This document shows, piece by piece, positions 1-16,318 of a stretch of 64,000 bases of DNA. The translations under genes were made by a program, and so were the position numbers. Within the stretch, counting starts at the first letter, position 1. The number at the start of each line of letters is the position of its first letter. Source of the DNA: Mizuhopecten yessoensis (lineage: Eukaryota); contig NW_018480065.1 in the NCBI RefSeq assembly GCF_002113885.1, positions 124,001 to 188,000 of the forward strand, given 5' to 3'. The notes beneath the pieces are model-generated. The model was not told the origin of the DNA and made no database searches. It worked only from the letters and a program-made list of their open reading frames with translations.

Positions 1-2207
1 CCTTTGTGCTGAAGTTCCCCTTGTGATATATAGGACGCATTTAATGAAATACTCGATGCTCAGAAACAGTTATATATAACCCAACATTTATACTAGTGGT
101 AATGAATACAAACCATGGCCCAGTTAGGATGTGTATTCCATGGCCAGTTTGTCTAGTTAGTAATGATGAGGTATATACAGGAATTTAATTAACACTACAA
201 TCTGAAGGAGTTTATAAACATTTTCATTAACTCCTCTACAATATTTTATAAATGATTTTCTTAAAAAGGCTTTTCATATTATAAACTGAATGCATATCAC
301 TGTGAAGTATTTAATTTAACTTTACATAATAGGTTTATGGTACATTATCATTCACTCGAGCAAATTGTATTTGTTTACTAAATAGTTTAGTTGCTCTCTC
401 TCTCTCTCACTCTGCTTTTTGTATTTATTTATTATTGATGACAATTAGAGGTTAAGACTTATTTACCAGTAGGGACCACATAATCAAAAGGCAATTTTGG
501 ATTTCGTTTGATCAGAATATTTCATTAAAGTGATGTCAACAGCCCATCCCTGTGATAGTGTACTGTGACTATCAGATATGTACACACAAGATTTTCCTGT
601 GTTTTTCTGAAGTGGTGTATTTAGTGTACATGAATGATGTACATATTTTATTTCAATGCAATTTGTACCTTACTACAGTCATAAGTAGAAAAAAATGCAA
701 TCTTTTATACTGTATGTAATATATATTTTTCTCATTTCAATACCCCATGTCCAATTGATAATCATTATAGAAATAGATCATAGTATTTAAACAAAACATG
801 CAGAGAAATATATCTGATATGCAAAGCTATAAAGAGTGCTGGCAGTATCGATTGCTACATGTATTTTGGTTGTGTTGATCTCGTGAACTTTTTGTCTCTA
901 AATGATAAAAAAAAATGCACATCGTGAATGTTTATGAAAACAACTGAAAAAATAAAAAAAATACCACAACTTTCGATATAATGATCCTATTTGATTTGGC
1001 CGGTGTTTATATAGTTTTCCTTGTGTATTTCAAGTCCTCATCTGTTTGTGGCGCACGAATATATTATTATGATCCATGTATCTCATTTTAAGCTTGTTTC
1101 TTTTAAATGCAATGAGCATTTTAGTACTGATCAGTGATATATACTATATTGATGTGTCGTGCGGTTACCTGTATGACGACGCAAGATAATGTATGAATGG
1201 ATTCATGGATATGTATTAACTGTGATTATTTGTAGTATCATCATTTTTTTTATCAGGAACAAAACTTATTTTATGGGTGGTGTAAGGAAACGAATGCCTG
1301 TCTACCCCAGATTTAATGAATCAGCAATGGTATTACTGTCATCGCAGAAACTTGATAATGGTGGCTGTAATGTAATGAACTGTTGTCATTCTACAGAAAC
1401 AAAACACTTGTCTGTACAATAAAACAAGTAGTAACTTGTGAGAATGAAGAACTTGCTTTGTCTTTTTCCTGCCACAGATGATTTCCACACTTAACTGCGG
1501 GCCCTTTCCTACAGCATTACCTTTACAATGCATGCTTTCTGGACTTACTGTTCTCGCCATAATTAGCACCCTCCCGCTTTTGAGAGGAGTTGGAAATTAT
1601 ATAAACTTCTTCACCATCCCAGACCTGACCTGACTTGGTCAATAACTTACGGTACTTGCACATTCAAGTGGAGATTTATGGCTAATCTCTCCTTGTAGCA
1701 GATGAAACATTTGTTATTGAAACCTCCAGTCAACTGAATATTCATAATGTCCTTTTATACTGAAACCATGGTTGAAGCTATACAAGTTCTATCATCACTC
1801 ACATTTTATTATCCTAATAAGTGCCCCTTTCAATGTTAATTTTGAAGTGCCCGGGCACTAAATACGGTAATGAAAATCACAAACAAACATTAGACAAACT
1901 AATCTTGGATGAGTGGGCCTAATGAAAATGAAGATTTGTTTTTTTAAGTATGTGAATACTTCATTAATCACTGAATGTGTGTGCTGTACTGTAAAAAGGT
2001 CACTGTGACCTTCATTCTGAGGTCAGAGATCAAATAAGTGCTAAATAATTTCTTACCCCAGGGTAAACTTGTATAAACAAGATGCAATAAAACAGATATG
2101 GTTTTTTTTCAAAAATTGTATTAATAAATTAACAATTTCAGAAAATACCAGCTTCTATCACAGATGTTTTAACTTCAATCACATTTTATTTGAGGATGTA
2201 GTTTAAA

Positions 2208-5200
2208 CTATTTTGGAATGTTCTTGCACTGAAATTCGTCCAGCCATTGTTGTACGTTCTCCAGCACATCATCAAATGAATCACCAGCACCAGTATTGTG
2301 ATCCTGCCCATCGAGGTCATTCCCCTATGGTAAAATAATAAATAAACATACATTGATAGCATTATTGCTGGTAAGAAATACTGGTACATCTTTTTCATTG
2401 ACTTTTAGATTTATTTAAAACACATTTTGCAACTTTCTACAGACTTGCACTTGTTCAACTTTCAGTATTAAAATAAAAACGAGAGTTAGGGGTCAAACTT
2501 GAGGGCCTATCCGTCACATTACAGATATTGCTAACCAGGAATTGGAAATGCTTAGTATCAAAATGAAAGATAAATATCCTGCCAAGGGAAGTAACTCTAA
2601 GCAAAAAGACATGTTTGTTAACCTTTCGATACATATTAAGAGATATTGCTCTCAAATCGAAAAAAACAGATCTGATAGGAAACAATGTGCAGGTACCCTT
2701 GACTGAATGATATTTGATTATGGATATATATTGCAGTTAAAATAAAGGTGCAATTCATGTTAACTTCTATATATAGCTTGACTTAATTTTACTGTCAAAC
2801 ATGACTTGCGTATCAAGTCGTTCCAATACATGAACAAAGACATACTTTACCTGGATTGAATAATTATCTCTGGCTTGGCCTGTACTGAAATTCAAATTAT
2901 CTATTGTCATTCGATGTTGTCCAAGGTCATTGAAGCAGTCTGTGTTTGCCACATGCTGGTCCTGTTGAGAGGACACTCCAGTATTACAACTGTTATACAG
3001 AGGATATCCATCCTGGTTAAGTGAATCTCCAGAGGGCCCAATACCCGTACATGTATCAGCAGGATGGAACATCCCAGCTTCTTGGCTTTCGTTATCATCA
3101 TTACCATGATGTATGCTGCTCATACTGTCTCCACATAGCCTTCCTTGTGTACCTACACTAGGAGCATGGATTTGACTGGAGAAATGACGAGGTTGACTGC
3201 AGTGATCACCAATATGTCTACGCCTGATGAATTCTCCACAACACTCTGTCCTTGAAGACTCTGCCAGGTTTGATAAGCCAAAACCACACCTATCATCCTG
3301 TGTAAAATTCTTGTCTGTCCTTATCTATTAATAAAATAAAAGAACTTTTGAAATATTTATCGATACAATAACAGAGAAACTTATATTTATTTGTAGGATC
3401 CATCAGTACCTTAGGGTAGTCTAGATGTCTACCATACAATTCCATAATGTGTAGTGAACTCTTCCTGAACACAATGCCACAACCAACATCTCCATGTGAC
3501 CGGTGTTACATGATTGATTTGACCCGAAACAAGATCCTGAAACTAGGATGATTCTTTGATGATACATCTGCTGTGTTTCTGTGACCAGATTTGTATCTTT
3601 GCTGTAATAACTGCAGATCTTTGTGAAAATTTAGATTATGTAAAAAAAAAAAATGCATTAAAGCATATTAAGATTCCTAGATTTATATAATACAATACAA
3701 ACCGCTACATATTGTACTACTTCTTGAAATTAATTCTTTTCATAGCAATGCTTTCACTAGGAATACATACCAGAGGTGTTGTGTGTACCATTAGACCACT
3801 CCCTGCAGAAGGTCCTTGCTCAAGGCCAAAGAAACCACTCGGTGTCGAAGTTTTATGTCCAATGCCTGAGAAACCACTCCCTGCAGAAGTTTCATGTCCA
3901 AGGCCTGAGAAACCACTCCCTGCAGAAGGTTCATATCCAAGGCCCGAGTAACTACTCCCTGCAGAAGGTTCATGTCCAAGGCCCGAGTAACTACTCCCTG
4001 CAGAAGTTCCTTGCTCAAGGCCAAAGAAACCACTCGGTGTCGAAGATTCATGTCCAATGCCTGAGAAACCACTCCCTGCAGAAGTTTCATGTCCAAGGCC
4101 TGAGAAACCACTCCCTGCAGAAGTTTCATGTCCAAGGCCTGAGAAACCACTCCCTGCAGAAGTTTCATGTCCAAGGCCAAAAACCCCACTCCCTGCAGAA
4201 GTTTCATGTCTAAGGCCAAAAAAACCACTCCCCACAGAAATATCATGTCCAAGGCCCAAGTAAGCACTTCTTGTAAGGGTTTCTTGTCCTTGATCTGTGA
4301 AATCACTCCCTTTGGAACTTTCTCGTTCTGGGGTGTTGAAACTGGCTTTTGTATGGGTATATGGTACTGCAAAAGGGAAACCACTTCCAGTAAAATTTTC
4401 ATGTTCAATCTTTACAGATTCACCCTCTGTAGAATATTCTTGACTTATTTCTGTGAATCCACTGTTAGTAAAATTTTCTGCGTAAGTTTCTTGCGCTCTG
4501 CCAGTAATGGTTTCTTGCCTTATTCCCTCTGTGAAACCATCCTCTGCAGAGATTTCATTTCTTAGATCTGTGAAACTACTTTCATTAAAGGTTTGTTGTC
4601 CTTGGCCCGTACAATAACTGGTAAATATTTCATGCTCTAGGTCCGTGTAACTACTCCCAATGGAGGTTTCTTTAGCTCCATCTGTGAAACTCCTTTCTCC
4701 TGAAGTCTCTTGCCCTAGGTTCGAGAATCCACCCTCGGCTGATTTTTGTTCTGGGTCTGTGAAACTCGTCCCTGCGGAGGCTTCATCATGGTTTGGATTG
4801 GTAAGAGCACAACCTACAGAATCTGACTTTGATGAGTTGGTCTTGATTGGGGAATGATTGTTTGCCTTTGTCTGACCTCTGACTCCACACCTTTCACTGG
4901 CGATGTTCCATAATCTGTTCGTGACCTCAGACTCCACAACTCGACTATTGTTAACCTGGGGAAATATCAGCATTCATCTCAAACCCTCACAGAAAAATTG
5001 ATAAATGCTACAAGATATTCACTTTTAAGATTTCATGATGTGATCAGGCGTCTGAAATATTGCTTCGGTGATAATTGGATGATATTGGAACTTGTCACAA
5101 TACACAAAAGTATTAGGACTTAAAATTCTCTTTCATGTTTCAAAAGGTTAGTCATATTCCAAATACAACTTGACACATGATTTATTTTTTCAGGGATCTA

Positions 5201-8200
5201 GTTAAAAACCCCAATAAAAAGATGTCTTTAAACATTGTATCTTATTCTTATAAATGGCCCAGAACTAGACACACATGGCTGTCAGATTACCGAAAGAAGA
5301 CTGAAGCACTGTTGGCGAAACTCCTCGTTGTTGCTGTGGGACAGGATATAGGAAATAGACTTGACCATGTTGGGTATCGCCTTGGTGTAACATTCTGTCT
5401 GAGGTCACAAAAAATAATCTTTAGTACACTAACCTAGCTAGTGTCTATACCAAATCCTGTATAGTCATGAATCTTTACACTGTATCCAAGGTAGTGACTA
5501 TACCAAATCCTGTATAGTCAGGAATCCTTACACTGTAACCCAGCTAGTGACTATACGGCATCCTGTATAGTCAGGAATCTTTACAATGTAACAAAGGTAG
5601 TGACTATACCAAATCCTGTATAGTCAGGAATCTTTACAATGTAACAAAGGTAGTGACTATACCAAATCCTGTATAGTCATGAATCTTTACACTGTAACCA
5701 AGGTAGTGTCTTTACCAAATCCTGTATAGTCAGGAATCCTTACACTGTAACCCAGCTAGTGACTATACCAAATCCTGTATAGTCAGGAATCTGTACACTG
5801 TAACCTAGCTAGTGTCTATACCAAATCCTGTACAGTCAGGAATCTTTACTCTGTAACCTAGCTAGTGTCTATAACAAATCCTGTATAGGCAGGAATCTTT
5901 ACACCGTAACCAAGGTAGTGACTATACCAAATCCTGTATAGTCAGGAATCCTTACACTGTAACCCAGCTAGTGACTATACGGCATCCTGTATAGTCAGGA
6001 ATCTTTACACTGTTACCTAGCTAGTGTCTATACCAAATCCTGTATACACTGTTACCTAGCTAGTGTCTATACCAAATCCTGTACAGTCAGTAATCTTTAC
6101 ACTGTAACCTAGCTATTGTCTATAACAAATCCTGTATAGTCAGGAATTTTTATACTGTAACCTAGCTAGTGCCTATACCAAATCCTGTATAGTCAGGAAT
6201 CTGTACACTGTAACCAAGGTAGTGACTATACCAAATCCTGTATAGTCAGGAATCCTTACACTGTAACCCAGCTAGTGACTATACGGCATCCTGTATAGTC
6301 AGGAATCTTTACAATGTAACAAAGGTAGTGACTATACCAAATCCTGTATAGTCATGAATCTTTACACTGTATCCAAGGTAGTGACTATACCAAATCCTGT
6401 ATAGTCATGAATCTTTACACTGTATCCAAGGTAGTGACTATACCAAATCCTGTATAGTCAGGAATCTGTACACTGTAACCTAGCTAGTGTCTATAACAAA
6501 TCCTGAATAGTCAGGAATCTTTATACTGTAACCCAGCTAGTGCCTATACCAAATCCCGTATAGTCAGGAATCTTTACACTGTAACCTAGCTAGTGTCTAT
6601 AACAAATCCTGTATAGTCAGGAATCTTTATACTGTAACCCAGCTAGTGCCTATACCAAATCCTGTATAGTCAGGAATCTTTACACTGTAACACAGCTAGT
6701 GACTATACCAAATCCTGTATAGTCAGGAATCTTTACACTGTTACCTAGCTAGTGTCTATACCAAATCCTGTACAGTCAGGAATCTTTACTCTGTAACCTA
6801 GCTAGTGTCTATAACAAATCCTGTATAGTCAGGAATCCTTACACTGTAACCCAGCTAGTGTCTATAACAAATCCTGTATAGACAGGAATCTTTACACTGT
6901 AACCTAGCTATTGTCTATAACAAATCCTGTATAGTCAGGAATCTTTACACTGTAACCCAGCTAGTGTCTATACCAAATCATGTATAGTCAGGAATCGTTA
7001 CACTGTAACCCAGCTAGTGTCTATAACAAATCCTGTATAGTCAGGAATCTTTAAACTGTAACCAAGGTAGTGACTATACCAAAGCCTGTATAGTCAGGAA
7101 TCTTTACACTGCAACCTAGCTAGTGTCTATAACAAATCCTGTATAGACAGGAATCTTTACACTGTAACCTAGCTAATGACTATAACAAATCCTGTATAGT
7201 CAGGAATCTTTACCCTGTAACCTAGCTAGTGTCTATAACAAATCCTGTATAGTCAGGAATCTTGATACTGTAACCTAGCTAGTGCCTATACCAAATCCTG
7301 TATAGTCAGGAATTTTTACACTGTAACCCAGCTAGTGACTATACCAAATCCTGTATTGTCAGGAATCTTTACACTGTAACCCAGCTACTGTCTTTACCAA
7401 ATCCTGTATAGTCAGGAATCTTTAAACTGTAACCAAGGTAGTGACTATACCAAAGCCTGTATAGTCAGGAATCTTTACACTGTAAGCAAGGTAGTGACTA
7501 TACCAAATCCTGTATACTCAGGAATCTTTACACTGTAACCCAGCTAGCGTCTTTACCAAATCCTGTATAGTCAGGAATCTTCACACTGTAACCAAGGTAG
7601 TGACTATACCAAAGCCTGTATAGTCAGGAATCTTTACACTGCAACCTAGCTAGTGTCTATAACAAATCCTGTATAGACAGGAATCTTTACACTGTAACCT
7701 AGCTAGTGTCTATACCAAATCCTGTATAGTCAGGAATTTTTACACTGTAACCCAGCTAGTGACTATACCAAATCCTGTATTGTCAGGAATCTTTACACTG
7801 TAACCCAGCTAGCGTCTTTACCAAATCCTGTATAGTCAGGAATCTTCACACTGTAACCAAGGTAGTGACTATACCAAATCCTGTATACTCAGGAATCTTT
7901 ACACTGTAACCCAGCTACTGTCTTTACCAAATCCTGTATAGTCAGGAATCTTTACATTGTAACCCAGCTAGTGTCTATAACAAATCCTGTATAGTCAGGA
8001 ATCTTTAAACTGTAACCAAGGTAGTGACTATACCAAAGCCTGTATAGTCAGGAATCTTTACACTGCAACCTAGCTAGTGTCTATAACAAATCCTGTATAG
8101 ACAGGAATCTTTACACTGTAACCTAGCTAATGACTATAACAAATCCTGTATAGTCAGGAATCTTTAAACTGTAACCAAGGTAGTGACTATACCAAATCCT

Positions 8201-11200
8201 GTATACTCAGGAATCTTTACACTGTAACCCAGCTAGTGTCTATAACAAATCCTGTATAGTCAGGAATCTTTACACCGTAACCAAGGTAGTTACTATACTA
8301 AATCCTGTATAGTCAGGAATCTTTACACTGTAAGCAAGGTAGTGACTATACCAAATCCTGTATAGTCAGGAATCTTTACACTGTAACCAAGATAGTGACT
8401 ATACTAAATCCTGTATAGTCAGGAATCTTTACACTGTAACCAAGGTAGTGACTATACTAAATCCTGTATAGTAAAGAATCTTTACACTGTAACCTAGCTA
8501 GTGTCTATACCAAATCCTGTATAGTCCGGAATCTTTACACTGAAACCCAGCTAGTGTCTATACCATTTACACTGTAACCTAGCTAGTGTCTATACCAAAT
8601 CCTGTATAGTCAGGAATCTTTACACTGTAACCTAGTTAATGTCTATACCAAATCCTGTATAGTCAGTAATCTTTACACTGTAACCTAGCTAGTGTCTATA
8701 CCAAATCCGGTATAGTCAGGAATCTTTACACTGTAACCTAGCTAGTGTCTATACCAAATCCTGTATAGTCAGGAATCTTTACACTGTAACCTAGCTAGTG
8801 TCTATACCAAATCCTGTATAGTCAGGAATCTTTACACTGTAACCCAGCTAGTGTCTATACCAAATCCTGTATAGTCAGGAATCTTTATCTTCTGTCTCGC
8901 TGTTCATTGATTCTATAGTCAAACTATAACCGAAATCTTAAAACCTGATAATTAAATGTAAATATTGCTCTATACAGTGTTTGGTTTAGACAGGTTGCTA
9001 TTAAATAAACAAAATTTAAGATAATATGGCATTACGTAGCATTCAATTGAGTCGCAGAAGAGATTGATGTTATTATAATGTTGGTGTTGTAACGGCCTTA
9101 ATGCTTCATTGTCAACATAGATATTGTCACTTAGTACCATTTTAGTAACTACCGTAATGCACAAGTTGAAAATATCCAAATTACACATCTGAATTCCAAT
9201 ATTAGATTGGGGTCTTTCAACATGACTTATCTAGGGGTTGAAATTCTGGTTGACTGGACCGTCTTTTAGGGGTTTGCTGAATCTTAAAGTATTTCAACTA
9301 TTCAACCTTCATGTCAGCTTGCTGATCATAAGGTAATTAAACTTCCGATGCGTTACTGAATAGATAATTTCTCATTCTTTGCAGATCATTTGTCGAGAAA
9401 AAAATTGATTTTATAATTACATGCAGCATATCTACTTTAAGATGTATTTAAAACATGAAGTATCAAAATCAATTGATTTGAAAATTGTTTAAGTTCAAAA
9501 ACGTTTGTTTCTTTTTTTCAGAGAATATGACTTTGAATCCCTATAAGAGTAGCTTTAGATATAAATTTCAATATTTGTGAAAAGATGATGTATTACAGTT
9601 TGTATTATCTGGTTGTAAAGAGAAAGAGGCCGAAAACTCTCAGCATCAAGTATACAGTATATCAGTAACTGATAGGTTTAACTGTACCTTTCTGTCCGTG
9701 TCCCTGTCTGGCTTTAGTAGGCGGGCCACTACTCCTGAAATAACCTTGTCTATCTCCTGTTGATGGTCCGTTAAAATACTGGGATAATTCTTTTGGAACC
9801 ATGCACAAAAATCTAGATTTTTCACAAACAAGAAAAATACCACAGTAATTTCTGATGTAAATAATTGACAAATAGTTTTAATATCAAGCACATGCATAAT
9901 TTCATAAAAGCAGAGATTTAAAAGTTTTACAGAAGAACAGTGTTTATTAGGTCTTTTATTGTATATCTCAAGTTGTAGTTACATACATAACAAATATTAA
10001 GACAATTTTACTTTCATTATATTATTTCTTTGTGAGTCAGAGAGAGAAAGAAGGACAAATTCCTACCTAGCTTAGCCTGTATAGGCTGACCGTCGATCCC
10101 AAAATGGACATGGATAAAGAGAGCAAACTTGCTGTCAACCTTCTTGTGTGTTTGTGGCACCGTAGACTCCAGCAGAGCAGCACAATGACTGGAGAACCTG
10201 TCTGGAATCAATCACCCATACAAATATTATCTTCATCTTGCCTAGCTATAACTGAGATGGAGGATGTTTCTGGAGTAACAGGTGATGCCACAACAAAGTG
10301 AATTTGGTAAACGTTTTTTGACCATACAGGCTCTGCAGTCTACCTGCGATAATTACAGGCCATAATTACCACCTGTCTTACAAGAGAACTCAGAAAAGTC
10401 AATTACAGGATCATGTAGGTTTTTCTCTCGGTACTCTTTTGGCACTCCATTTTCCTCACATATTAAGACCCCCATATATACACTACCACATGCACTTTGC
10501 TGGAATCTACAGAATTTGCATTAAATTTTTATCATAATGTGTTTAATTGTGTGCACAAAATCAACAAACATCAAATGAGCCTAACATCCATATACCTACC
10601 TTCCATTGAAGCACTAGTGGCATGAATGTTCAGACCATACATGTTCCACGGAATCTGTTCCAGAGGATTATATTGGGTACTTGTATCTTTCAACACTGGG
10701 AATACAGGGACAGCCTCTGGACCAAAAAGGTACAGCTGTGGAGAACATATAATTCATTTAAACTCACAACAGAAGACTTACAGTCAGGCATTTCATCCAA
10801 GAAAGCCTGGCACAATATCTGTAGTTACTTAAACATCTGCAACATTTGACCTTGCCAAATAACCTTGTGCAACCTTTGATCTTGACCTTGTGTAAACTTT
10901 GACCTAGGTAACCTATGACAAATGGCAAATGGTAACCTTTGACCTAAGTTAATAACATTTAAAAGTTGATCAATCCGGTATATAAGAACTCACTGAATCC
11001 CAAGGAATCTGTTTGCATGAGATTCACTTACATTTATCAGTCCTGCCGTAGCACAGGTTCCAAGTCGGCCACCTCCTCCTCTTCCTTGTACATAGTTCAT
11101 ATGAGCTACTACTTGTAGAGTGACAGTGTTAGGATAGGAAGAATCTCCCGTCCCCTCACACGCAGATAGCTGGGTTATCTCACTACAGACAGGCACTACA

Positions 11201-14200
11201 AATCGACTGGTACAAACATACGATGTGTTTCTGAAATAATAAGATAAGTTTATTTCTGGTACAAGTTCATTTCTTATCCTCTACATCGGATTCCAAATAA
11301 TACATATATATATACATAATAAATCACAAAGTTATAATGTTCATATGTTGCCACATCATTTTATTGATGAATTTCAGATTTATAATTATACAAAAGTAGG
11401 GTACACGTAGGTTGTTCCATATATGCAGTGAAATAAGTTTTGTCGGAGGCTGGTCCTTGCCCATATATATATCAAATATATTTTTTGTAATTTGAAAGGT
11501 TACACAATTTACACAGCAGATCTTGAAAAGCCACTGACTTACCCATGCCTCCTTTATGTAAACTTTTAGTGCAATAGACATAGCTAGATATTACCATTTC
11601 TCCCACATTAACCACTACTGTAGATTTTCTCACTCCCGATTCATTGGATAAACCTGCCAGGAGTAATTGGTAAACAGTTTTGGTTACCCACTAGTGGGTA
11701 ACAATAGAGGGTTACACCCTGGACCAACTTTCATTGGTCAATATTCTAATTAAGTAGCAATACATTTCGACATCATCTTTCATTGTGACATCACAGTTCA
11801 TGGCAATTGTTTCCTCGATCGGAAACAGGAATTATGCAATCCCAAAAGTAACATAATTATGATTTTCTGGATATAATATCTGAAAGTTTCAAGAGAAAAT
11901 AAGATCCCCAAACTTGTGATGGTTGAGTACCATGTTTATCTAGCTCTCTTTAGTTAATTTCAAACTTTCAAACACACTCAGTTATACCTTGTGTCTTTTA
12001 AACAATTTGAAAATTAATTAACTTGAGATAGATATATAAACATGACCACCAATCATCACTCATTGGGAACTTCTACTTATACCTGTCTATGTGGGATGAC
12101 ATTTGTGCAATAGAAAAAACTAATATTGCAACAGAGAAAGCAGTAACATGCACATGAACAGCTTCACATCACACTGTATTACATGTTAGTATACCTATAA
12201 TGTTTTAGAGAATTGGTGGACAAATGTTGAAATCAATATCCAGATACATAAAAGATAACAGGGATTTTTTCCTACAGTATAAATATAAAAATAAATTTCA
12301 ACAAATAAACAAATGCACAGCTTTACACCATGATGTACTGACACCTAAATGTTAAAAAAAACACCAGTTCATATTAATGCATTGCCAGTTTAGCCAGACA
12401 ATACATGCACATCTATGAATATATAGAGAGTTAATGTGGTAGGGGTTATTATTACTATAATATTACATCATGTTGTATTGATACATTTTTTTTTACTGAA
12501 ATCAGCTCATAAATACAGAAATGCATAACATATAACTAGTAAAGGGACATAACTCCATTAACATGTGTTGTAACAGAGAAACAGTTACACTTACACAGTT
12601 TCATACCATGTTGTATTAAAAAATAAAAATATATATATATATATTCTATTTCCTATATATGGCAAAATTCAAAACTGGACAATTCTTCTGTACACTGATG
12701 TCAGAATTTTTAAAGTATTTCTCACATTCTTGCGATTCTCACAAAATACTTTACCTCAGAAAGTAGGAAGCATCTCCACATATTTCAAGAGGACTTCCAG
12801 ACAAATTCATTGATGTGCAACTGAAAAGAAATAATTTGATTATAATCCAATTTTACTTTTGTATTAATTATAAAATCACAGCAACCTTCTTTTAATAGAC
12901 ATATCATCAACTATCAGTCAGATTATATAACAATGTTGAAAAATTATACATGCGACACATTTTTTTTTGTCCTGGAATTTCTCTCTTCTATACAGTAGAT
13001 CAAGCAGCAAAAACAAGTTTTTTCTGGCTGAGAGTAACTTAATTCCCCTGTCAAATTTTTCATAAGCCTTGTGGCTGATACGTTGGACACTCATGCTTTC
13101 ACAATTGCTGTATGGTGCCATTGGTAAAGTGTATGCTTTGCTTTGTAAAGGTTCCAAGTTTGAACTTGTAGTTTTCGTCTTTTTATTAGCATTTACAATT
13201 TTTGTGAAATGCATGGTATCATGTAAGGTACAATGTAAGGTCTTAAAAAATATTTCACAATAGTAACAAATGTAATAATATAGTTTACTAATTCAGAATT
13301 CTTCCAAACAAGAGGAAATATATATTTGAAACACAATCAAACGTTATTGAAAATATATTTTTTAATTTATTTTTTACAATCTGAGGATAATTCGATATCA
13401 CTCTTTTACCCTTTAAACAATTTTAAGTTCCAAACACATGGAAGTGATTATAAAAAAGTGTGAAATAAAGTAGTCATTACAAACCTAAAGTCTGATTCAC
13501 ACAAATTCTCATAGATTTTCATGTTGAACTCCAACTGTATCTGAAATCAGAAAAAGAACTGTTAAAGCAAACAACCTTGTGATTTTGTGTTTGTAAACAA
13601 TGCTTAAACAATATGCTTTTTTTTTTAATTTGAAACTATTTTGCCAATTGGTAGGATATTTTTATCCATACGGAGAAAAAAAAAGGAAAGACGAAAACCC
13701 ATTTTCACTATTTGTACAATTGTGACAAATACGCTTCCTGTACAAAAAGGCCTGTTATAATAGTTTACCTTTGGGTTGAATATCTTGTATAACCAAAGAT
13801 ACTTGTACATTTTCTGGCATTCAAGCATCATTAAGTGTTTAGAAAGGAGGATCTGGAATCAACCAAACAGAAACATGATTACTGCATCGTTTTACATTCG
13901 TTTAAAAACAAATGAAGAATTAATTAATTGTGTACAATCTTTAACATTTGCTTATTTTATGAACATTGAATAATACATAACTTGGGACAAAATGATACCT
14001 CACCAAATGAATCAATACTGTTTACAGAGAAATGTCCACACGGTCAAATTTTTCGCCCTTAAATTGCCTGTAAAATCAATATTCGCCCAATATTCAATTC
14101 GCCCTTTACATTTAATTACTATGTATATTATTTTGTTTGCAAATGTTTGCTGTAATCCCAGATTGTAAAGTCAGAAAAGGGAGGACATGCTTAAATATGA

Positions 14201-16318
14201 TAATACATTGCAATACTGAACACACTTTCCATATAAATTCATGTGTTCACAGGTACAAAGTTCATGATTTACAGATATTATGACTATGGCAAGCAAGAGG
14301 ATAATTACCTGTAACCTAGACCTCAGATAAGGGTTCTGATAGCAGAATATCCTTAGCCAAGTACAGTTTTGCACTGCTATTATGCTATCAACTTGTGTGA
14401 CAACTTGTGTGAAATTACTCCAAGACCTTCACTTGGTGAGATGACTTTTTAATGACTTTAAGATGTAGAGGCCACCCTCTAGTTTATGTGATGACTGACC
14501 AGGGTCATTACTTTAAGATGTGGAGTGGTGTCCAGAGGTTCGTGTGATGACCTAAAATATCGATGATACCCCGATTTATATGACAACTTACTCGGATATG
14601 TATAGTGACACCCGATGGTTTCTTTGAAGACTTTGTGGAGGTACTAATGCAGTGGAGGACAAGTTGAGATTGATCTTCACCATGCCGGACCTGGAAACTT
14701 TTCTGGGTGATAAGGCCAGGAGACTGGAGGTACTGGACACACAAGTGACTCTCATCTTCTGTTAACTGCATGGCGCTCAGGACAGGTAGTAGTTCACGGT
14801 CTTGTGTTTGTGTCACTGTATCAGGAAATCAGGGAATTTTGTAATACTAAGCCAGGTAATATATATACATGTACATGTAAATGTCTTTGCATAGTATTAA
14901 GCAAGAGACTTATTTAAATCATGTCACACTTTCTCTACTTTTTATTTGATCTCGGTCAAAATTCATGTTTTTTGGGGGGTTCCTTGGCCCTTATTGAAAC
15001 ACTGGCCTACAATAAACTTTGATCCGCTAGGTACTGCCTCTGAAAATGGCCTAAACTGATCTGCATCTGATAATGAAAAGCAAATACATTAAATCACTAT
15101 TTAAAATAGTGTTCTTCATTTCCTTATCATTGTTCGCAAGGTAAAATAACTCTTACACAGAAAGCATAGAATACTACCATGAATTTTGGAGTACAGGAAA
15201 GGTTATATACATACAGCTGGACATGAATTCCTCTGCATTTGATGAACTTGAATGTACTGAAAATAGAAATAATATATATATGGAGCTTATATTTCACCAT
15301 AACTCACTATCTTTTTGTTCAAAGATTTATTTGATACAAAAAAGATCTGAAAAGACAAATTTCCTTTACTCATATCTGATCTGCCTCAATGAAAAACACG
15401 TTTTATACAGTGTATTTAAAAAAATAACAAAATAGAATTAATAAACTATCAGAAATGTTGTTTGGCCTCAAGTATTTGTTAGATTATATTTCTATTGGTA
15501 CATCTACAGGGATCATAATATCATTATGAACAACATTTAGATTGATGCCGATTTATATTGAAATTTAGTTAACAGTCTGAACTGCCATTTAATTGGAAGA
15601 CCCGACAATACAATACGGGTTCAGACACTTAAAACACAAACACTGTCAGTGGAATGGTTAGTGTTTCTGGTTTTTACACATTGTATATTCATTTTTGCAT
15701 TTGATTATCAGGGAATACCTTTTATACAGATACTTATATCAGGACATTAATTTGTCAGCTGGTGCGGCACAAATTTGTCGAAATAAATTGACTGTAAATA
15801 TACTGATCGTAATTCTTTTCGAAAAGAAAAAATGGGAATTAGATTAAGTGTGTTTCAATATTTGGTTTACATGCTTTCAAACATAGATGGAGAATTATGG
15901 GTTATCACGACAAGCTAGATCTTATGTCGCAAACATTTGAAAATATTACAAACATTTTAAATGAAATAAACATGCTTCATTTTCCTCTTCCGTTCCTGCT
16001 GTTTTTATCTGCAGTTTTAGACTTTTGTTGGCGAGTCCTGCTCTCATATCTTGGGCAAAATGAAACATTTCAATAATCTGAAATACAAAAAAGAATTTAT
16101 GTTAACTAGTAAAGCGTACATTATTGATATGACGCCAGTTGATGAAATCTTCAAGTTATTTGCATCTTTCCAATTATTTTAAAATAAGTATGTCATTGAG
16201 TTTAACTGGCCTTAAAGAGTTTGATAGTATATTTTGTTTATTTCAAGTAGGTCTATATGTGTTTTCATTTTATTACCTCTTGCACAGCTCTATGAATTGT
16301 GAGATCTACATTCGCCAT
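2208..16318 (-). CDS. TOP6BL: Type 2 DNA topoisomerase 6 subunit B-like (TOPOVIBL), SPO11 partner; about 15 exons, about 1070 aa
   Basis: GT-AG exons with consistent phase: 16318-16277, 16077-15954, 15256-15215, 14815-14592, 14494-14309 (contains in-frame TGA, boundary uncertain), 13540-13485, 12820-12755, 11230-11032, 10735-10600, 10201-10067, 9812-9688, 5398-5291, 4955-3771, 3324-2851, 2324-2208. Peptides LYLFGPEAVPVF..IPWNMYGL, FALFIHVHFG, KAIPNMVKSISYILSHSNNEEFRQQCFSLL and terminal DDVLENVQQWL follow the order of recalled human TOP6BL motifs (IFLYGPLGLP..VDWKKYHL, LLFLFVDFH, SIMSILTGSTRSSFRKMCLQTL, WLQEVSNLSEWL). AATAAA at 2190-2185. Confidence 0.82.
3790..4790 (-). repeat. Coding 39-bp (13-aa, GSGFSGLGHETSA-like) tandem repeat inside the large TOP6BL exon
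   Basis: About 12 near-identical units at 3790-4260, then degenerate units to about 4790. A 195-bp (5-unit) higher-order duplication is visible at 3813 vs 4008. Confidence 0.9.
5425..8887. repeat. 53-bp minisatellite array, about 65 copies, in a TOP6BL intron
   Basis: Unit tacactgtaacctagctagtgtctataccaaatcctgtatagtcaggaatctt. Period is 53 (caaatcc at 5451 and 5504). Two interspersed variants (cctagctagtgtct and ccaaggtagtgact). Confidence 0.97.
10408..10572 (+). mobile_element. V-SINE-like fragment
   Basis: ggtttttctctcggtactc...ccattttcctcac resembles the conserved V-domain of SINEs; degenerate. Confidence 0.35.

Follow-up and report, generated by a model that had tools for sequence, protein, structure and literature searches.

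A divergent scallop gene resembling TOP6BL, with a candidate REC114-binding helix at its C-terminus

Within a 64-kb stretch of the genome of the scallop Mizuhopecten yessoensis (contig NW_018480065.1, positions 124,001 to 188,000 of the forward strand; hereafter "the window", part of a 988-Mb assembly in 82,659 contigs), the minus strand carries, between positions 16318 and 2208, a multi-exon gene that is very probably the scallop ortholog of TOP6BL, also called TOPOVIBL. For the joint reading, drawn by analogy with mouse, that this gene is a TOP6BL whose terminal helix binds REC114, we put the probability at about 0.7. The gene itself is real, intact and conserved across three scallop genera. 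Meiotic recombination cannot start without TOPOVIBL, a protein whose rapid divergence makes annotation pipelines overlook it.

The gene model was built by comparing two scallop orthologs with the window by tblastn and by reading the splice sites. An exhaustive HMMER search seeded with the 74 residues of exon 4 (14592-14813) gave as its top match a 706-residue Argopecten irradians protein (XP_069118224, here P0001) at 74% identity and an expect value (E) of 4e-26, annotated as "uncharacterized protein"; the second match, a 1391-residue repeat protein at 25% identity (P0002), was judged spurious. The orthologs, A. irradians XP_069118223.1 (from a cluster of six isoforms) and Pecten maximus XP_033735007.1 (LOC117323704), both bear that same name. 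Exon by exon they are 48-84% identical to the window; they share its exon order and terminal motif and, as judged from these alignments, are true orthologs of the window gene. All 14 exons of the model are backed by both relatives, have AG acceptors and GT donors and are phase-compatible throughout; together they form a frame of 2637 nucleotides encoding 878 residues, with zero internal stops. The preliminary description of this locus had counted 15 phase-compatible exons. Fourteen of these stand, whereas the fifteenth (exon 13b in Table 1), which would bring the protein to 1036 residues, is optional and has no ortholog support by sequence.

Domain order, fold and family assignment

Comparison of residues 1-470 of the A. 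irradians ortholog with the ESM Atlas returned, as its six best feature matches, chordate TOP6BL clusters carrying PF15091. These clusters, labelled "type 2 DNA topoisomerase 6 subunit B-like", scored 0.95-0.96 with 184-193 of 256 features in common, a level that shuffled proteins attain about once in 100; the next family after TOP6BL scored 0.80-0.81. In the accompanying fold comparison, which sets low-confidence predicted models against each other on both sides, the Atlas model of the ortholog (residues 3-470) ranked chordate TOP6BL first, with a template modelling (TM) score of 0.62, and matched plant MTOPVIB and archaeal TopoVIB with TM scores of 0.57-0.62 over alignments of 340-384 residues; TOP6BL, MTOPVIB or TopoVIB filled nine of the ten rows of structural matches. 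The P. maximus transducer, submitted alone, again placed chordate TOP6BL first, more weakly (score 0.83; TM 0.56).

Inspection of the exons and of the orthologs revealed that the Bergerat boxes are gone, since neither E...N..D nor D.G.G occurs in any of them, which agrees with metazoan GHKL-like TOPOVIBL, where the N-box and G1 box are absent; the search for ATP-box patterns picked up one G-rich stretch, in the window species alone. The features of a catalytic TopoVI B subunit are likewise missing from the gene, with neither a Pfam match to HATPase_c or Topo-VIb_trans nor conserved N, G1 and G2 boxes. Toward the end of the putative transducer, the motif of exon 11 reads WFQKNY, WLRKNY or WLRNNY in the three species, and a low-confidence AlphaFold model of the ortholog places helices at residues 362-399, 409-428, 433-445 and 452-467, corresponding to exon 11 through the start of exon 13. 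Conservation is highest in the helix exons 11-13, exon 12 being the best conserved of all, and in the tail; it is the terminal helices of the transducer and the tail that are named as conserved in metazoan TOPOVIBL (PMC9671922).

Several results weigh against this assignment. Sequence and profile searches with the ortholog, even at E up to 10, returned only the two scallop proteins, both from Pectinidae. Pfam, including DUF4554, gave nothing at E up to 10 either with the orthologs or with the ten longest open segments, of which seven are or contain exons; a six-frame scan of the genome with PF15091 (DUF4554) gave no candidate, with control genomes that are uninformative for a eukaryotic family; and sequence searches of the PDB with the tail, the ortholog and a profile found nothing relevant, the matches being chance ones such as the caspase-9 CARD at E 2. 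The Atlas model of the ortholog is itself of low confidence (predicted local distance difference test, pLDDT, 0.51; predicted TM score, pTM, 0.48), and the tool calls its matches leads. An AlphaFold model of ortholog residues 1-470, computed from the three-species alignment, reached a pLDDT of 38.5 and yielded meaningless rows in Foldseek against the PDB and in the Atlas shape search; because this check came out uninformative, the fold evidence has a single source, a low-confidence model. A profile match to TOPOVIBL, the lack of which had been set beforehand as refuting the identity, was thus not obtained, whereas the Atlas features and fold support that identity. Since TOPOVIBL is reported to diverge beyond sequence detection and the DUF4554 model is centred on chordates, the failed match lowers the case for membership in PF15091, not in TOPOVIBL.

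The same negatives bear on the reading that the locus encodes a GHKL/transducer-like protein of the scallop lineage, for example another GHKL relative, that is not a functional TOP6BL and whose tail resembles the mouse peptide by chance. We regard this as distinctly unlikely. Detectable relatives are indeed restricted to Pectinidae, profile searches link the protein neither with DUF4554 nor with a PDB chain, and the family assignment comes from a single tool and a model of low confidence; yet all six leading feature matches and nine of ten structural rows fall in TOP6BL, MTOPVIB or TopoVIB, with the next family scoring lower. Domain order, absent ATP motifs, the long disordered region and the terminal helix all fit TOPOVIBL, a protein known in the literature for escaping sequence searches, and the shuffle test described below makes a chance match of the motif unlikely. 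The identification of the locus as TOP6BL thus remains the preferred one. Where the preliminary description had the motifs following vertebrate TOP6BL in order, no hidden Markov model or other profile detects TOP6BL here, but the order does hold as structural collinearity over ortholog residues 6-468.

The terminal helix and its REC114-type motif

As the preliminary description had claimed, the tail is encoded by a separate last exon. The acceptor of this exon is strong and rich in pyrimidines, and its stop codon, TAG at 2210-2208, is followed by an AATAAA. Both peptides quoted in that description lie where it placed them on the minus strand (SISYILSHSNNEEFRQQCFSLL at 5294-5359 and SFDDVLENVQQWLDEF at 2232-2279). 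Across the three genera the tail keeps DSFD.V.E.VQ.WLDE unchanged, with 14 invariant positions, and forms the single conserved island of a fast-diverging, disordered C-terminal region. The A. irradians isoform X1 joins its large exon directly to the tail and ends in DSFDAVMENVQHWLDEF before the stop; isoforms X1, X4 and P0005 all terminate in GLLMHKSKL followed by GDACNGQGVEAEDSFDAVMENVQHWLDEF and a stop, the equivalent of exon 13 (window donor 3771) being spliced straight to the tail. In P. maximus the tail exon lies about 930 bp past the stop of the RefSeq model and closes with GAGDSFDAVLEDVQQWLDEV and a stop codon. For the last exon of the window gene, AlphaFold predicts that residues 13-35 are helical, at a pLDDT of up to 91.

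The mouse peptide that binds REC114 (559-EDLWLQEVSNLSEWLNPG-576) makes its contacts through L561, W562, V566, L569, E571, W572 and L573 (PMC9671922). Aligned with mouse 559-576, the scallop GDSFDDVLENVQQWLDEF requires no gaps: D560, N568, W572 and L573 are identical, while W562 is replaced by Phe, V566 by Leu, L569 by Val and E571 by Gln. The spacing of all five contact positions is preserved, the four contact positions mutated in mouse are all hydrophobic in scallop, and W572-L573 is kept. The alignment scores 19 in BLOSUM62, against a maximum of 8 for other 18-mers of the C-terminal region, and 67 of 20,000 shuffles reached 19; a relaxed pattern of the motif occurs twice in the 128,000 six-frame positions of the window. 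Published work reports a 14-residue C-terminal motif conserved in metazoans, with REC114 interaction predicted in many of them (PMC9671922), and a C-terminal domain with a REC114-type helix in all metazoan TOPOVIBL (PMC9665070). In the portions of these two papers that were available, no mollusc TOPOVIBL is named, and we found no paper pairing TOPOVIBL or TOP6BL with molluscs.

That the helix contains a Trp, as originally noted, holds true along with the gapless match, but this Trp corresponds to mouse W572; the residue essential for REC114 binding in mouse, W562, is Phe in all three scallop genera, and the mutation W562A by itself abolishes mouse binding (PMC9671922). This replacement, which counts against REC114 binding, is the reason to consider a TOP6BL ortholog whose tail helix departs from the mouse pattern of REC114 binding, having either another partner or another mode of binding. 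A further point in favour of such a departure is that the REC114 PH domain of the window genome is not identifiable exon by exon. We nevertheless hold it to be unlikely: Phe for Trp is a conservative aromatic replacement, the five-contact spacing and W572-L573 are retained, no other part of the C-terminal region is conserved, and the interaction is predicted across metazoans in the literature (PMC9671922). Binding of REC114 in the manner of mouse accordingly remains our preferred reading of the tail.

Candidate partners are encoded in the same genome. One is a TP6A_N exon of SPO11, with E 1.5e-8. The other is a REC114-like gene, the last exon of which aligns with positions 194-236 of PF15165, at E 5.9e-10 in hmmscan and 4e-6 in the genome search (Table 1). 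The C-terminal exon is the confirmed part of the latter gene; neither Pfam nor the PDB recognised a PH domain in the open segments upstream, a further point to be set against the proposed interface. By eye, two of those segments, one starting MAAISTVWSLKRYARL and one with RFRLQF, have the look of PH-domain exons.

By analogy with mouse, the product of the locus would be a non-catalytic B-like subunit that pairs with SPO11 for the formation of meiotic double-strand breaks. Its N-terminal ~470 residues would comprise a GHKL-like domain without ATP-binding motifs and then a transducer ending in three long helices, the putative interface with SPO11. A fast-evolving disordered region of 400-560 residues, made up in part of 13-residue repeats, would tether the terminal amphipathic helix, DSFDxV[LM]ExVQxWLDE, which may dock on the REC114 PH domain through its F, L/M, V and W-L residues, much as mouse 559-576 does. 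It is from this analogy that we infer SPO11 binding, REC114 binding and a meiotic role. The conservation of a REC114-type interface in a scallop, as first proposed for this locus, is supported on that basis. The proposal is not new, because a metazoan-wide motif had already been stated (PMC9671922, PMC9665070): the finding bears out a published prediction and opens no new question.

The tether differs among the scallops. In the window gene, exon 13 carries a 39-bp in-frame tandem repeat at 3795-4311 (about 12 copies; Tandem Repeats Finder gives 11.8 at 3795-4256) that encodes 13-residue units like SGFSGLGHETSAG within the disordered region. The C-terminal regions of A. irradians and P. maximus are shorter and without this regular array, which is species-specific, since the relatives have just degenerate [L/G]xQETS...F units. 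A speculative possibility, to which we give low odds, is that scallop TOP6BL has its own mode of engaging REC114, or a competitor (an ANKRD31-like protein, for example), distinct from that of mouse, by way of the Phe anchor, the tether of 400-560 residues and the repeats. Were this so, the roughly twelve SGFSGLGHETSAG repeats could add multivalent or condensate-type contacts, and alternative 3' splicing, which in A. irradians would include or omit the tail, could switch REC114 coupling on and off. Three A. irradians isoforms have the REC114-type tail (X1, X4 and the 638-residue P0005) and three are without it: X2 and X3 read past the exon-13 donor, and X6 has an early stop. These differences may reflect alternative 3' processing or noise in the models.

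In the window species the tail extends seven residues past the motif (QCKNIPK), an extension absent from the other genera. Here, at 2225 and 2229, the contig from sample X1 shows two in-frame 3-nucleotide deletions and two substitutions.

Gene structure, transcripts and surrounding sequence

The window has the base composition of AT-rich eukaryotic DNA. Coordinates of the exons and of the other features are collected in Table 1. For exon 3, a single acceptor/donor pair preserves both the frame and ortholog-like residues. The start of exon 13 is conserved, and its remainder is 26-38% identical to the orthologs by tblastn. An exon occurs at the position matching exon 13b in the P. maximus model, with no significant sequence similarity between the two (E 1.3); isoform X1 of A. 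irradians goes without it. RefSeq model XP_033735007 of P. maximus falls short at either end: exons 1-6 and the terminal exon are missing from it, although the genome has both (LR736840.1; L007 6281-9506 and 31196-31288), exons 1-6 lying upstream of the model's start codon.

Three further segments are skipped in the orthologs and hence are not exons. Those at 10339-10211 (43 residues) and 9230-8973 (86 residues) on the minus strand are open and protein-like, intronic in position and used by no ortholog; the phase of the first fits exon 9, yet a 14-nucleotide intron would be needed to reach exon 10 from it. An early guess at an exon at 15088-14966, which the orthologs pass over, was discarded.

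Table 1. Exons of the TOP6BL-like gene in the window and associated features
Feature	Position	Strand	Content and evidence
Exon 1	16318-16277	-	start codon ATG at 16318; donor GTAATA; MANVDLTIHRAVQE; matches the N-termini of both orthologs
Exon 2	16077-15950	-	GHKL-like domain, N-terminal helices; tblastn 62% identity, E 9e-10, to A. irradians isoform P0006 residues 15-56
Exon 3	15246-15215	-	32 nucleotides; weak tblastn match to P0006 52-70; least certain boundary of the model
Exon 4	14815-14592	-	GHKL-like beta-strands; tblastn E 1e-29; donor GTAAGT
Exon 5	13852-13769	-	tblastn 68% identity; splice sites read
Exon 6	13540-13485	-	tblastn 79% identity; splice sites read
Exon 7	12820-12755	-	tblastn 78-79% identity to both orthologs; splice sites read
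Exon 8	11230-11032	-	transducer-like part begins; tblastn 52-57% identity; donor GTAAGT
Exon 9	10735-10600	-	tblastn 53-67% identity; joined straight to exon 10 in both orthologs
Exon 10	10201-10067	-	tblastn 62-65% identity; splice sites read
Exon 11	9812-9688	-	first long C-terminal transducer helix (predicted at 362-399 of the ortholog); tblastn 49-62% identity; W-x-x-[K/N]-N-Y
Exon 12	5398-5291	-	second transducer helix region (predicted at 409-428 and 433-445 of the ortholog), holding SISYILSHSNNEEFRQQCFSLL; identity 68% to A. irradians, 84% to P. maximus
Exon 13	4955-3771	-	last transducer helix VNNSRVVESEVTNRLWNIAS, then ~370 disordered residues rich in Ser/Gly/Thr/Glu, with 13-residue repeat
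Exon 13b (optional)	3324-2851	-	158 residues; phase 0 at both ends; good acceptor and donor; from a 185-codon open segment
Last exon	2324-2208	-	Gly/Asp linker, REC114-binding-like helix (motif 2232-2279), stop codon
Polyadenylation signal AATAAA	2190-2185	-	18 nucleotides past the stop codon; read directly
53-bp satellite	5430-8887		period 53 by Tandem Repeats Finder; ~65 copies overall, matching at 89-96%; located in intron 11
REC114 gene	G000:C3184 ~518,400-527,200 (L006)		last exon matches PF15165

Transcript evidence lends the proposed tail no support. In the window species, neither the contigs of samples X1 and X2 nor two raw RNA runs contain GT..AG joints or spliced reads for the last exon. 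At the acceptor (2324) the X1 and X2 contigs continue along the genomic sequence without a break and therefore derive from DNA or unspliced RNA; on the exons of the gene the two raw runs yield four reads, every one from run X24 and in exon 13. Because no spliced read was obtained, we infer the splicing of the last exon by analogy, from the RefSeq isoform of a relative.

The near absence of reads on the gene in the sampled RNA runs, together with a second short contig that carries part of it (exons 7-11), raises the question of whether the copy is decaying or untranscribed in the window species. Such decay is highly improbable. No stop interrupts the frame across the 14 exons, whose splice sites are canonical; the second contig (C82023) is a 98% identical haplotig and not a paralog; and few reads are to be expected in bulk RNA for a meiosis-limited gene. 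Moreover, in contigs from two other individuals 2232-2324 differs by no more than one substitution, whereas the 140 nucleotides downstream have 12, and both tail indels are in frame. An intact gene therefore remains the reading that we adopt.

The second contig (G000:C82023, L005; 4902 bp) matches window 8862-13625, with one indel near 12934, and most likely represents an unmerged haplotype. Intron 11 is filled by the 53-bp satellite, which has higher-order periods of 106 and 159 bp. Just 3' of the gene, at window 1500-2000, contig depth rises to 85-190x, against 5-15x elsewhere. RNA reads of run X21 also fall here, and contigs have loose ends at 1787 and at 1820, which suggests a high-copy element that is transcribed somewhere.

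Comparison with known systems

The overall predicted fold of the scallop protein, GHKL followed by transducer, resembles that of Arabidopsis MTOPVIB and archaeal TopoVI B, with the TM scores given above. Archaeal TopoVIB has the N, G1 and G2 ATP boxes and an H2TH domain, whereas no such boxes were found in the scallop gene; plant MTOPVIB, unlike the scallop protein, is without the metazoan C-terminal motif (PMC9671922).

Relative to mouse and human TOP6BL (TOPOVIBL, Gm960/C11orf80; PF15091, DUF4554), the scallop gene is without similarity detectable by HMMER, has Phe in place of W562, and is without RCE1, the neighbour expected from vertebrate-type microsynteny, which is absent at the scallop locus. 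Its disordered region spans ~400-560 residues, with 13-residue tandem repeats, compared with ~120 residues in mouse. The order of parts is nonetheless the same: a GHKL-like domain free of ATP motifs, a transducer of long helices, a disordered C-terminus and a terminal helix, the last of which would, by analogy, bind REC114 in scallop as well. TOP6BL is also the best Atlas match of the scallop ortholog in both features and fold. Within a very different C-terminal region the terminal helix has survived, with Phe replacing a Trp that is essential in mouse. Besides correcting the annotation of two RefSeq sets, the scallop gene would add a mollusc to comparisons of the SPO11-TOPOVIBL-REC114 machinery.

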